From Hemiscyllium ocellatum (taxonomy: Eukaryota): a stretch of DNA of 64,000 bases. The stretch is from NCBI RefSeq assembly GCF_020745735.1, contig NW_026868161.1, positions 1-64,000 on the forward strand, given 5' to 3'. The notes under the pieces were generated by a model. That model worked only from the letters and a program-made list of their open reading frames with translations, made no database searches and was not told where the DNA came from. This document shows, in pieces, positions 2,432 to 36,973 of the stretch (the first letter of the stretch is position 1; each line of letters opens with the position of its first letter). The position numbers and the translations under genes were made by a program.

Positions 2432-5400
2432 ATGGAGACGGGGTCTCACTCTGACCTGAAGGACTGTGTGCTGACCAGGCCCCAGGTTAAACTGGTCCAG
2501 GACGTGGCGTTCCCAGACTGGGTCGCAGACAACTGGAGCCTGGTGGAGACTTTCCAGGCAAAGGCCGGGGATCTACTCATCGCAACCTACCCCAAAGCAG
2601 GTGAGGGGCGGAGGGAGAGGGAGAGAGGGTCACAGGGGCGGAGGGAGAGGGAGAGAGGGTCACAGGGGCGGAGGGAGAGGGAGAGAGGGTCACAGGGCAG
2701 AGGGAGAGGGAGAGAGGGTCACAGGGGCGGAGGGAGAGGGAGAGAGGGTCCCGGGGCGGAGGGAGAGGGAGAGAGGGTCACAGGGGCGGAGGGAGAGGGA
2801 GAGAGGGTCCCGGGGCGGAGGGAGAGGGAGAGAGGGTCACGGGGCGGAGGGAGAGAGGGTCACAGGGTGGAGGGAGAGAGGGTCACAGGGCGGAGGGAGA
2901 GGGAGAGAGGGTCACAGGGCGGAGGGAGAGGGAGAGAGGGTCACGGGGCGGAGGGAGAGGGTCACAGGGCGGAGGGAGAGTGAGAGAGGGTCACAGGGTG
3001 GAGGGAGAGGGAGAGAGGGCCCCAGGGCGGAGGGAGAGGGAGAGAGGGTCACAGGGCGGAGGGAGAGGGCCCCAGGGCAGAGGGAGAGGGAGAGAGGGCC
3101 CCAGGGCGGAGGGAGAGGGAGAGAGGGTCACAGGGCGGAGGGAGAGGGCCCCAGGGCGGAGGGAGAGGGAGAGAGGGCCCCAGGGCGGAGGGAGAGGGAG
3201 AGAGGGCCCCAGGGCGGAGGGAGAGGGTTCCAGGAGAGAGGGAGAGTTTCCAGGGTGAAATGAAAGGACCTCACGGCAGAGGGAGAGACATGGTCCCACG
3301 ATGGAGGTAGATGGTGAGGGGCCCAGGGTGGTGGGGGAGACATGATCCCACGATGGAGGGAGATAGTGAGGGCCCCAGGGCGGAGGGAGAGATATGGTCC
3401 CACGATGGAGAGGGTGGGCCCCATGACGGAATGAGATGGTGAGGGCCCCAGGGTGGAGGGAGAGACATGGTCCCCACGATGGAGGGGGTGGGCCCCATGA
3501 CGGAGGGAGATGGTGAGGGCCCCAGGATGGAGGGAGAGACATGGTCCCCACGATGGAGGGGGTGGGCCCCATGAGGGAGGGAGATGGTGAGGGCCCCAGG
3601 GCGGAGACATGGCGAGTGGGTTAGGGAGGGTCTGGTTGAATGATTGACTATGTTTATATTTTACGCCCTGTCCTTCACTCTGCTGCTCTGTCCTCTTCCT
3701 CCCACTCCCTCCCTTTCTCTGTCTCTGACCCTCTCCCTCCCTCCGTAGGGACCACCTGGACCCAGGAAATTGTGGATCTCATTAACTGTGAGGCCGATGT
3801 GGAGGTGTGTAGACGGGCTCCTGTCTACGACCGCATCCCCTTCCTGGAGTTTTTCCCTGGTCCGATCAATCTTCCCAGCGGTGAGTGTCTCTGTCAGTGA
3901 CCCCCGTACCCCTGGGAGGGGGTGAGGAGGGAGGATAACGTGTGGGACCCCCCCAGCCCGGGCTAACCCTGTCCGGGTTAATTGCAGGAATCGAGCTGTT
4001 GGAGAAGATGGAGTCACCGCGGACGGTCAAAACCCACCTGCCTTTCCAACTCGTTCCCAAATCCTTCTGGGAGCAGGACTGTAAGGTACGGGACTGAGGT
4101 GGGGGGGGGGGGAGACACTGAGGGACATGGGGAGAGTGTGGGAGACTGGGAGATGGATAGATTGTTGGGGGGAGACACTGAGGGACACGGGGAGAGTGAG
4201 GGAGACTGGGAGATGGATAGATTGTTGGGGGGAGACACTGAGGGACACGGGGAGAGTGCGGGAGACTGGGAGATGGATAGATTTTTGGGGGAGATACTGA
4301 GGGGATTAATGAATGCATCTTTCTCCCTGTTCCCAGGTAATTGTAGTCGCTCGAAATGCCAAGGATAATGCGGTCTCCTACTTTCACTTCCATCGGATGT
4401 GCCAAAACATGCCTCACCCTGGGACCTGGCAGGAATTCCTCCAAAATTTCATGGACGGTCAAAGTGAGAAACATCTTCCTCTACACTGTCCCCCCATCAA
4501 ACCCACCCAGGGACAGGGACAGCACGGGGTTAGATACAGAGTAAAGCTCCCTCTACACTGTCCCCCCATCAAACACTCCCAGGACAGGGACAGCACGGGG
4601 TTAGACACAGAGTAAAGTTGTGGTTCTGTTCACCGCGCTGGAAGTTTTTGTTGCAAACGTTTCGTCCCCTGGCTAGGAGACATCATCAGTGCTCTGGAGC
4701 CTCCTGCAAAGCGCTTCTCTGATGTTTCTTCCGGTATTTATAGTGGTCTGTCCTTGCCGCTTCCGGGTGTCAGTTCCAGCTATCCGCTGTAGTGGTTGGT
4801 ACATTGGGTCCAGGGCAATGTGTTTGTTGATGGTGTTTGTGGATGAGTGCCATGCCTCTAGGAATTCCCTGGCTGTTCTCTGTCTGGCTTGCCCTATGAT
4901 AGTGGTGTTTTCCCAGTCGAATTCATGTTGCTTGTTGTCTGAGTGTGTGGCTACTAGGGATAGCTAGTCGTGTCGTTTCGTGGCTAGTTGGTGTTCATGG
5001 ATGCGGGTTGTTAGCTGTCTTCCTGTTTGTCCTATATAGTGTTTTGTGCAGTCCTTGCATGGGATTTTATAAACTACATTAGTTTTGCTCATGTTGGGTA
5101 TCGAGTCCTTTGTTCTAGTGAGTTGTTGTCTGAGCGTGGCTGTTGGTTTGTGTGCTGTTATGAGTCCTAAGGGTTGCAGTAGTCTGGCTGTCAGTTCTGA
5201 AACGTTCCTGATGTATGGTAGTGTGGCTAGTCCTTTTGGTTGTGGCATGTCCTCGTTCCGTGGTCTATCTCTTGGGCATCTGTTGATAAAGTTGCGCGGG
5301 TATCCGTTTTTGGTGAATACCTTGTATACCATGATCTCATTCGACGTGACGGCACTGTTCGCTTCGATTGACAAAACCCTAGCCAGAGAAACAATAGCCA

Positions 5401-36200: not shown

Positions 36201-36973
36201 AATCTAACCATCGCCCCCTTGACGTTCAATGGTGTTACCGTCACTGAATCCCCCCTCCCCCCCACTATCAACATCCTGGGGGTTCCCATTGAGAGAGAAT
36301 CTAACCATCGCCCCCTTGACGTTCAATGGTGTTACCGTCACTGAATCCCCCCCTCCCCCCCCACTATCAACATCCTGGGGGTTCCCATTGAGCAGAAACT
36401 GACCCGGACCCTGCCCCCTATCAATCCTGTGGATTCAGGAGTAGGTCAGAGGCTAGGAATCCTGCAGCGAGTAACTCCCCTCCTGACTCCATCCACCCCC
36501 AAAGCCCCGTCCCACCATCGACGGGACACAAGTCAGGAGGGTGAGGGAATACTCCCCCTACTTGCCCTGGATGGCGGCAACTCTGACAAAACTTGCGAAG
36601 CTCAACACCACCCGGGACAAAACAGCCCCCTCCCTCGATCGAGATGCTGACCCCCCACCTTCAACACCTACCACCGCAGTGGGACAGCACTATGTACCAT
36701 CTACAAAATGCAGTGCAGAGACTGGCTGAGACAATCTCGGAGCGATGAAGGGGTCAAGAGCACGAAGTGGGTCAGGTGACTCACATCATTTACTCTACAA
36801 CAATGTTTATACAATCTTTCTCTCTCTCACCCCCTCTTTCCTTCTCTCCCTCCCTCCCAGGTGAGGTGGGAGACTGGAAGAACCACTTCACGGTGGCTGA
36901 GAACGAACGTTTTGATGAACATTACACGAGACAGATGGCTCTGTGCTCAGTGAGGTTTCGCCAGGAGCTGTGA
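33243..36973 (+). pseudogene. SULT1: SULT1-family copy 4 with a 2-nt frameshift in exon 6. Exons 33243-33411, 33701-33832, 34855-34952, 35079-35205, 35457-35551, 35864-36042, 36861-36973
   Basis: Exon 6 is 179 nt rather than 181: GTCCTCGAG has become GTCCGAG at ~35927, giving a premature TAA at 35981-35983. Otherwise intact, so an assembly error is possible. Confidence 0.75.
33932..34845 (+). mobile_element. CR1 LINE 3' fragment in SULT copy 4 intron 2
   Basis: [10 protein letters not shown]...[11 protein letters not shown]...[31 protein letters not shown]...[13 protein letters not shown]; flanked by TAATT. Confidence 0.9.

Follow-up and report, generated by a model that had tools for sequence, protein, structure and literature searches.

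Old pocket loops in a young scaffold in a tandem array of SULT1C-like genes of the epaulette shark

The tandem set of four SULT1C-like sulfotransferase genes described here, from a window of 64,000 nt out of a 69,111-bp unplaced scaffold of Hemiscyllium ocellatum (epaulette shark), can be compared with several described systems. The red/green opsin genes are tandem duplicates that gene conversion keeps near-identical except for a peak of divergence at the sites that set their specificity. Exon 5 of the opsin genes is treated under the "peak of divergence under gene conversion" model of Teshima and Innan 2008 (review PMC3924837), and this opsin peak is interpreted as the trace of selection acting against conversion (PMC3924837). 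Another divergence-peak case is known from the GOT1 paralogs of the copepod Tigriopus californicus (PMC3728101). Within the SULT1 enzymes, the hominoid genes SULT1A1, SULT1A2, SULT1A3 and SULT1A4 form a recently expanded cluster with the decisive changes near the active site. Positive selection after duplication was reported for this hominoid low-copy repeat, in a text that does not contain the word "conversion" (Bradley and Benner 2005, PMC555591).

In the shark array, old loops lie in a young scaffold. The copies form a patchwork at the DNA level, and grouping by species and grouping by ortholog are discordant between the scaffold and the three loops of the acceptor pocket. Like the red/green opsins, the shark genes are tandem duplicates that diverge at sites expected to set specificity. 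Unlike the opsins, they have three peaks per gene and at least four paralog lineages instead of two, and the peaks are backed by orthology between two genera; the function of the shark peaks is a prediction. Compared with GOT1 of T. californicus, the enzyme family and the taxon are different, and the shark genes form a multi-copy tandem array with the islands on known substrate-binding loops. In contrast to the hominoid SULT1A genes, the shark loops predate the split of the genera and, apart from one copy pair given below, do not exceed a dN/dS of 1; homogenisation of the rest of the gene is the dominant signal. The best sequence matches, human SULT1C2 and SULT1C4 (PDB 2AD1, 3BFX), carry the same motifs, but the shark proteins have two more residues in loop 1 than the SULT1C2 chain 2AD1. 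The shark array also adjoins TUFM, which in human is a neighbour of the SULT1A and not of the SULT1C genes. A literature search found no paper on shark cytosolic SULT1 enzymes or describing the H. ocellatum array. The array is a new example of a known phenomenon and opens no new category, as peaks under conversion are already established in theory and documented for the opsins and other families.

Three variable loops in four similar genes

The window has a G+C content of 56% and a single run of N at 532-667. All four genes are located on the + strand and have seven coding exons each, separated by GT-AG introns (every exon boundary was inspected). Position 2432 marks the ATG of copy 1 and position 36973 is the final base of the copy 4 stop codon. 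Copy 1 consists of exons 2432-2600, 3749-3880, 3988-4085, 4337-4463, 6954-7048, 7488-7668 and 8479-8633 and encodes 318 aa (RefSeq XP_060678904). Copy 2, also of 318 aa (XP_060678906), is encoded at 12861-13029, 16073-16204, 16359-16456, 16939-17065, 17316-17410, 17703-17883 and 19418-19572, and copy 3, of 302 aa (XP_060678903), at 25587-25755, 26355-26486, 26632-26729, 26838-26964, 27135-27229, 27485-27659 and 29133-29245. The exons of copy 4 are 33243-33411, 33701-33832, 34855-34952, 35079-35205, 35457-35551, 35864-36042 and 36861-36973, with a broken frame in exon 6. The translations of copies 1, 2 and 3 agreed letter for letter with the RefSeq proteins, which are named "sulfotransferase 1C4-like"; the RefSeq labels of the shark genes are "sulfotransferase 1C4-like" or "1C2-like". 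At least five further H. ocellatum copies (P0130, P0124, P0121, P0128 and P0123) were found on scaffolds of 47.8, 25.0 and 24.0 kb. The family would have about nine members in H. ocellatum, some of which may be alleles or haplotigs.

The positions of the substrate loops were taken from SULT1A1, for which the published limits are residues 81-90, 145-154 and 235-263 (PMC6969939). These were mapped to the shark protein by three anchors, TYPKSGTT at 45-52 (shark 52-59), His108 (shark His117) and RKG at 257-259 (shark 266-268), with offsets of +7 and +9. The mapped shark loops are residues 88-99, 154-163 and 244-272, together 51 positions. Alternative limits of 83-91 and 141-158 have been given for loops 1 and 2 (PMC12529757), and a structural survey described three often-disordered substrate loops across the SULT family (PMC1847840). 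Residue 146 is among the loop 2 ligand contacts of SULT1A1 (PMC6969939). It corresponds to shark residue 155, which is C, S, M or N depending on the copy. SULT1A1 residue 146 separates the phenol form from the dopamine form.

The amino acid differences between the four copies were found to be about five times denser in the mapped loops, with 20 of 51 variable positions compared to 21 of 253 elsewhere (Fisher P=2e-7). For copies 1-3 alone the figures were 18 of 51 and 9 of 253 (Fisher P=1e-9). A first-pass annotation of the window had quoted twelve loop peptides and described the copies as near-identical outside them. All twelve peptides were recovered on the + strand at the expected places, and the variable stretches were borne out as the three acceptor-pocket loops of SULT1 enzymes by the mapped SULT1A1 limits. 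At the nucleotide level, exons 1, 5 and 7 differ by 1-3, 0-2 and 0-1 positions, with 7-8 differences (three residues) for exon 7 of copy 4. Exon 3 is identical in copies 1-3 and has 8 differences (four residues) in copy 4. The differences are concentrated in exons 2, 4 and 6, with 3-12, 5-14 and 9-16 differences, respectively. Copy 4 also differs outside the loops, at 13-19 of 263 scaffold residues.

Loop 1 is encoded at the end of exon 2, at 3847-3879 in copy 1, 16171-16203 in copy 2, 26453-26485 in copy 3 and 33799-33831 in copy 4 (EFFPGPLNLPS). Copy 1 carries the ancestral type and copy 2 a derived type common with copy 3. Loop 2 in exon 4 reads HRMCQNMPH in copy 1 (4391-4417), HRMCQDMPH in copy 2 (16993-17019), HRMSQNMPQ in copy 3 (26892-26918) and NRMMKNMPQ in copy 4 (35133-35159). 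Loop 3 in exon 6 is found at 7608-7643 in copy 1, at 17823-17858 in copy 2, where it is of a type also present in P0130 and P0121 on other scaffolds, at 27605-27634 in copy 3, where it has a 6-bp deletion, and at 35982-36017 in copy 4, 3' of the frameshift. All loops are on the + strand.

Age of the loops and mosaic relationships of the copies

Nonsynonymous (dN) and synonymous (dS) divergence was calculated by the Nei-Gojobori method, with codons 90-100, 151-160 and 245-263 as loops. The dS was 0.25-0.30 in the loops (0.07 for copies 1 and 2) compared to 0.03-0.10 in the scaffold, and the dN was 0.12-0.24 compared to 0.008-0.037. The resulting dN/dS was 0.4-0.9 in the loops (2.0 for copies 1 and 2, on 1.5 synonymous differences) and 0.23-0.37 in the scaffold. 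Between copies 1 and 3, synonymous changes were counted at 5 of 22 sites in the loops versus 8 of 167 in the scaffold (Fisher P=0.009); for copies 2 and 3 the excess was of similar significance, Fisher P about 0.009, on small counts.

The introns were compared after masking of tandem repeats, and only well-aligned unique columns were kept. The unique intron divergence was 0.023 for copies 1 and 2 (scaffold dS 0.031), 0.050 for copies 1 and 3 (0.047) and 0.048 for copies 2 and 3 (0.053). In the pairs with copy 4 it was 0.090 for copy 1 (0.083), 0.127 for copy 2 (0.097) and 0.135 for copy 3 (0.101). As the intron divergence equals the scaffold dS in all six pairs, introns and scaffold exons are of one young age. 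The loop dS is several times this level, which marks the loops as islands of old sequence within a homogenised background. An alignment of whole introns, with 75-95% identity, had suggested that the homogenisation was restricted to exons; this was rejected when repeat masking brought the intron divergence to the scaffold dS.

The pattern differs from fast adaptive change in young duplicates. A nonsynonymous excess in the loops had been expected in the first-pass annotation and was not observed, as dN/dS was below 1 in five of the six copy pairs. Neither are the loops being diversified at present, as had also been proposed; the loop sets predate the genus split and orthologs differ by only 2-3 residues.

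A mosaic of blocks was observed in copy 2. Variable sites among copies 1, 2 and 3 were classed by the copy that was the odd one out. Copy 2 is copy-1-like in exon 1, at the end of intron 1 and in the initial part of exon 2. A copy-3-like tract with copy-1-like flanks follows at 16176-16217 (+), running from loop 1 to the first bases of intron 2. Two other copy-3-like tracts are located at 17045-17297 (+), where the tract takes in the 3' end of exon 4 with residues 169-176 and continues in intron 4, and at 17926-18711 (+), where it lies within the 5' half of intron 6 and is partly missing from copy 1. Outside these three tracts, copy 2 is copy-1-like or equidistant. A runs test on all sites gave 23 runs compared to 57 expected (P<1e-5). 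Some of the intron clusters in this test may be due to misalignment (18 sites in 30 bp, 18837-18867), and the test was hence performed on exons only, where 9 runs were found (P=0.004). Alignment-free BLAST windows of 100 bp showed the same switches. Copy 2 was 99-100% identical to copy 1 and 83-88% to copy 3 at the end of intron 1, and 88-90% to copy 1 and 97% to copy 3 at loop 1. The three-way classification and the BLAST windows replaced a four-way scheme of informative sites with copy 4 as outgroup, which was discarded because too few usable intron columns were available and because an upstream block that grouped copies 1 and 4 against 2 and 3 was not a homologous alignment.

The groupings stated in the first-pass annotation were correct, with copies 1 and 4 against 2 and 3 in the exon 2 loop, and copies 1 and 2 together at the end of intron 1 and at the 3' end, where they have a stop loss. 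As to the mosaic derived from them, the block patchwork of copy 2 is present at the DNA level, while the grouping of copies 1 and 4 in loop 1 is no evidence of exchange between these two copies. The loop 1 type of copies 1 and 4 is also found in the whale shark and other outgroup sharks, so that the grouping is a shared retention of the ancestral type. What is informative is that copy 2, in a context otherwise like copy 1, bears the derived loop 1 known from the copy 3 lineage. In P0130, from a different scaffold, loop 3 is of the copy 2 type and the first two loops are of the copy 1 type. As read from these assembled genes, new loop combinations do arise, as in copy 2 and P0130. A Chiloscyllium plagiosum protein was considered as three-way-mosaic evidence for shuffling and was set aside, as its model may merge two copies. 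Loop 3 is the one difference between the predicted C. plagiosum isoforms P0132 and P0002, whose gene takes up 9 kb of a 25,436-bp scaffold; exon 6 may be duplicated and alternatively used, or else the model covers two tandem copies.

The age of the loops was further studied by comparison with predicted proteins of Chiloscyllium punctatum, which come from independent assemblies. P0129 is the counterpart of copy 1; its loop 1 is EFFPGPLNLPS, the peptide also seen in copy 4, its loop 2 is HRMCQNMPQ and its loop 3 is the same as in copy 1. P0122 is the counterpart of copy 3, with the same loop 1, the same loop 2 (HRMSQNMPQ) and in loop 3 (NYSTLPT--MDQ) the same 2-residue deletion. Two partial proteins do not cover loop 1. 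P0133, with NRMMENMPQ in loop 2 and NYSTFPSNVMDR in loop 3, is the counterpart of copy 4, and P0131, with HRMNQGMPH in loop 2, is that of H. ocellatum P0123. On a 54.6-Mb C. punctatum chromosome of assembly GCA_047496795.1, which carries XP_072422699 and XP_072422702, the copy-3-like gene lies 3.2 kb downstream of the copy-1-like gene on the same strand.

In the quartet of H. ocellatum copies 1 and 3 with P0129 and P0122, grouping by species was supported at six sites (26, 48, 71, 78, 113 and 185), none of them in the loops. Grouping by ortholog was supported at nine sites (91, 93, 94, 95, 145, 155, 246, 251 and 254) and by the 2-residue deletion, all in or beside the loops, and the third topology at no site (Fisher P=2e-4). 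In the scaffold, the paralogs differ by 8 and 6 residues and the orthologs by 14 and 11. In the loops, the orthologs differ by 2, 2 and 3 residues compared to 10-13 for the paralogs (11 and 10 in this quartet). Approximately unbiased (AU) tests rejected the ortholog clades for the scaffold columns (p=0.010, 0.004) and the species clades for the loop columns (p=2.5e-5, 1e-5, 6e-6). Maximum-likelihood trees of the two partitions were discordant in the same direction, where congruent trees had been named in the first-pass annotation as contrary evidence. Four further quartets gave the same picture, with no site for the third topology and at least four old lineages; in these, the copy 4 lineage escaped homogenisation across most of exons 3-7.

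By polarisation with outgroup sharks, E71 and R78 are derived and occur in each of the seven full-length H. ocellatum copies, and V26 and V48 are derived and occur in each of the three full-length Chiloscyllium proteins. Since derived residues are common within each genus, homogenisation acted in both lineages. The proposal that the scaffold is homogenised between paralogs thus received support from residues that are species-specific outside the loops and ortholog-specific inside them.

Explanations for the pattern

The observations are probably explained by old SULT1C-like paralogs whose scaffold was overwritten by interlocus gene conversion, with the loops spared by selection. Before the Hemiscyllium-Chiloscyllium split, there would have been at least four gene lineages with a three-loop set of their own. 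After the split, interlocus gene conversion, probably together with unequal crossing-over, would have repeatedly overwritten exons, unique introns and flanks, and as a result of such overwriting the paralogs within a species look young (2-5% among copies 1-3). Around each of the three loops, a short island (about 20-80 bp) would have resisted, and these islands would have kept their old divergence at synonymous as well as nonsynonymous sites. The most likely cause of this escape would be that converted loops alter the substrate preference and are purged by selection; the copies would then differ in their substrate preferences. The same exchange would occasionally build new loop combinations such as those of copy 2 and P0130. 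The positions of the islands map to loops 1-3 of SULT1A1, and they may coincide with sites that set the specificity of the shark enzymes.

Several points weigh against this explanation. The array is located in a repeat-rich part of the genome on an unplaced scaffold of 69 kb, and changes that may be disabling are present in two of the four copies. Synonymous changes in the loops are few (about 5 of 22 sites), the loops are without a nonsynonymous excess, and selection on them is deduced from their persistence. The comparison of the genera is at the level of predicted proteins only, and the species grouping has only six supporting sites. Furthermore, the loop partition was refined after the data had been seen; residue 145 is outside the 145-154 limits but inside the 141-158 definition.

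The low divergence of scaffold dS and introns (2-5% among copies 1-3), the concentration of differences in the pocket loops and the loop dN/dS of 2.0 for copies 1 and 2 would also be expected if the duplicates were young and independent in each genus, with loops that diverged fast by positive selection and no conversion. This is very unlikely, as C. punctatum repeats each loop set with 2-3 differences, including the same 2-residue deletion, and convergence at nine residues and an indel is implausible. The loop columns moreover reject the species clades (AU about 1e-5), and the loop dS is raised as much as the dN, with dN/dS below 1 in five of six pairs. Even less credible is the opposite view, that ancient duplicates never exchanged sequence and owe their scaffold identity to strong purifying selection. 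The low scaffold dN/dS (0.23-0.37) and the conservation of loops between orthologs would agree with it, but synonymous sites and unique introns show the same similarity as the scaffold (2-5%) against a loop dS of about 0.27, and the mosaic of blocks in copy 2 runs into the introns. It is also contradicted by the species-specific derived residues common to the paralogs and by the rejection of ortholog clades in the scaffold columns.

The mosaic could be an assembly artefact, in which a collapsed or mis-joined repeat, or two haplotypes stitched together, resulted in chimeric copies. A 69-kb unplaced scaffold with related copies on 48-, 25- and 24-kb scaffolds and introns filled with minisatellites is a setting for such errors; the frameshift of copy 4 and the lone K-to-I change of copy 2 could be errors too, and the public read contigs are too short for any block junction. 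The loop combinations and the order of copies 1 and 3, however, recur in the chromosome-level assembly of C. punctatum, an older assembly of the same species repeats loops 2 and 3 of copy 4 (P0133), and the combination of copy 2 recurs on a second scaffold (P0121). The contigs of four runs from at most three samples show only four base differences, with patchy coverage, and the discordance between the species does not depend on the 69-kb scaffold alone. An artefact is accordingly considered improbable. A reversed direction of transfer, with truly young gene bodies into which old loop cassettes were pasted from diverged donors or pseudogenes, is somewhat less improbable but still unlikely. It is drawn from the same data, namely old islands of 20-80 bp in a young background and the new loop-set combinations of copy 2 and P0130. 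It requires donor loops that were stored separately, with each set kept intact in both genera, and the complete three-loop sets of copies 1 and 3 in both genera are simpler to understand with old lineages and an overwritten scaffold.

A modular array was also considered, in which conversion maintains a common body and the loops are exchangeable cassettes whose combinations are selected, giving hemiscylliid sharks combinatorial sulfonation specificities for xenobiotics, hormones or bile alcohols. Copy 2, with loop 1 of the copy 3 type and loop 2 of the copy 1 type, and P0130 would be examples. Such a combinatorial repertoire is doubtful, though less so than the other alternatives, and it counts against it that copy 4 and possibly copy 2 may be without an active enzyme.

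If old paralogs were overwritten by conversion everywhere but in the three pocket loops, the surviving residues are flagged as selectively important. They form a shortlist of candidate SULT1 specificity determinants (shark residues 91-98, 152-160 and 246-259), to which natural loop-swap variants are added. The array is also a warning for annotation and dating, as trees or dS would put the duplications after the genus split while the loops show an older origin. In these four genes for detoxification-type enzymes, conversion restrained by selection would be clear, but not unprecedented.

Family assignment, possibly disabling changes and surroundings of the array

Copy 1 matched Pfam Sulfotransfer_1 (PF00685) with E=5e-97 over residues 47-294, nearly the whole protein. 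Its best PDB matches were two chains of human SULT1C2 (E=2e-116, 2e-110), followed by SULT1B1 (3e-108) and SULT1A1 (about 1e-103); SULT1E1 was also matched, and the E values over SULT1C2, SULT1B1, SULT1A1 and SULT1E1 ranged from 2e-116 to 8e-95. As judged from sequence, membership in the cytosolic SULT1 sulfotransferases is beyond doubt. The motif KxxxTVxxxE is a defining motif of the family, and this dimerisation motif was found at residues 274-283. The 5'-phosphosulfate motif of SULT1A1 is 45-TYPKSGTT-52 (PMC6969939), and the corresponding phosphosulfate-binding (PSB) loop TYPKAGTT is present at residues 52-59 in all four copies. So is the catalytic histidine in KTHLP (residues 115-119), shark His117 being equivalent to SULT1A1 His108. 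The 3'-phosphate motif RKGxxGDWKxxFT at residues 266-278 is intact in copies 1 and 3; copy 4 reaches RKG..GDWK..FT only in a conceptual reading that ignores its frameshift. The predicted activity of the shark enzymes is sulfonation of small acceptors dependent on 3'-phosphoadenosine 5'-phosphosulfate (PAPS).

SULT subfamilies are named by a rule of at least about 60% amino acid identity. The identity of the shark proteins to tetrapod SULT1C proteins is 58-62%, straddling this border, and the assignment to subfamily 1C is therefore not firm. Downstream of copy 4 and tail to tail with it, a gene for mitochondrial elongation factor Tu (EF-Tu, TUFM-like) was found at 46000-57900 on the minus strand. 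EF-Tu motifs are located at 50459-50482 and 48871-48885, and two exon peptides matched Pfam GTP_EFTU. Human TUFM is located near SULT1A1 and SULT1A2 at 16p11.2, a SULT1A and not a SULT1C neighbourhood. Judged by this neighbour, the shark array, although named "1C-like", may correspond in position to the SULT1A locus of mammals.

The frame of copy 4 is broken by a 2-bp deletion in exon 6, between 35926 and 35927 on the + strand, which was identified by alignment of the four exon 6 copies (179 nt in copy 4 versus 181). The loop 3 peptide of copy 4 is downstream of the frameshift, in another frame than the start of exon 6. No copy 4 protein was found in the database protein clusters, and the C. 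punctatum ortholog P0133 is intact at this point. The public reads were available as very short Logan contigs, in which paralogs cross-map in conserved exons, and the run guessed to be RNA also has intronic contigs. No alternative or indel was listed at the copy 4 frameshift in the contigs of four public runs, which are very short and do not show coverage of the exact site. The frameshift is given as assembled and could be an assembly error. In copy 2, the exon models have an ATA (Ile) codon at 17880-17882 (+), which changes RKG to RIG in the PAPS 3'-phosphate motif; P0121, a near-twin of copy 2 on another scaffold, keeps RKG. Copy 4, by its frameshift, and perhaps copy 2, by RIG, may be inactive in this assembly. 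For several copies (P0003, P0125 and P0135), RefSeq predicts isoforms that skip exon 2 and are without loop 1 and the residues after the PSB lysine. Such isoforms, if real, would probably be inactive.

A stop loss, TGA to GGA, was found at 8589-8591 in copy 1 and at 19528-19530 in copy 2 (+), and the TGA is kept in copies 3 and 4. It adds 14 residues to copies 1 and 2. The same stop loss is present in P0130, P0124, P0121 and P0128 and in no Chiloscyllium protein. It is a further change confined to H. ocellatum, where six copies with differing loops have it.

The sequence 5' of copies 2 and 3 (12226-12747 and 25044-25461) recurs with 96-97% identity about 2 kb upstream of copy 1 (1-520), where it is parted from the gene by the run of N (532-667) and an extra minisatellite. 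This shared upstream sequence of copies 1, 2 and 3 indicates that the repeat unit of the array reaches well past the genes. Most introns (1, 3, 4, 5 and 6) contain G+C-rich minisatellites with periods of 30-190 bp, whose copy number is very different between the paralogs; they are located at 2606-3606, 13035-15930, 16469-16905, 18897-19415, 28322-29130 and other places. Intron 1 is shortest in copy 4 (289 bp) and longest in copy 2 (3,043 bp). The intronic minisatellites may both trigger and limit the exchange between copies. Downstream of copies 1, 2 and 4, at 9771-10755, 20729-24226 and 39875-40705, one and the same 49-bp minisatellite is repeated in arrays with 20 to 72 units.

Two introns are lengthened by insertions. 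Intron 4 of copy 1 contains a 513-codon open frame at 5073-6611 (+) with a match to RVT_1 (E=1.6e-7), and the retroelement insertion accounts for its length of 2.5 kb, compared to 170-251 bp in the other copies. The segment 33993-34742 in intron 2 of copy 4 had contig depths of 1e4 to 1e6 in all four runs and is a high-copy dispersed repeat, because of which this intron is 1,022 bp long instead of the 107-154 bp seen in the other copies.

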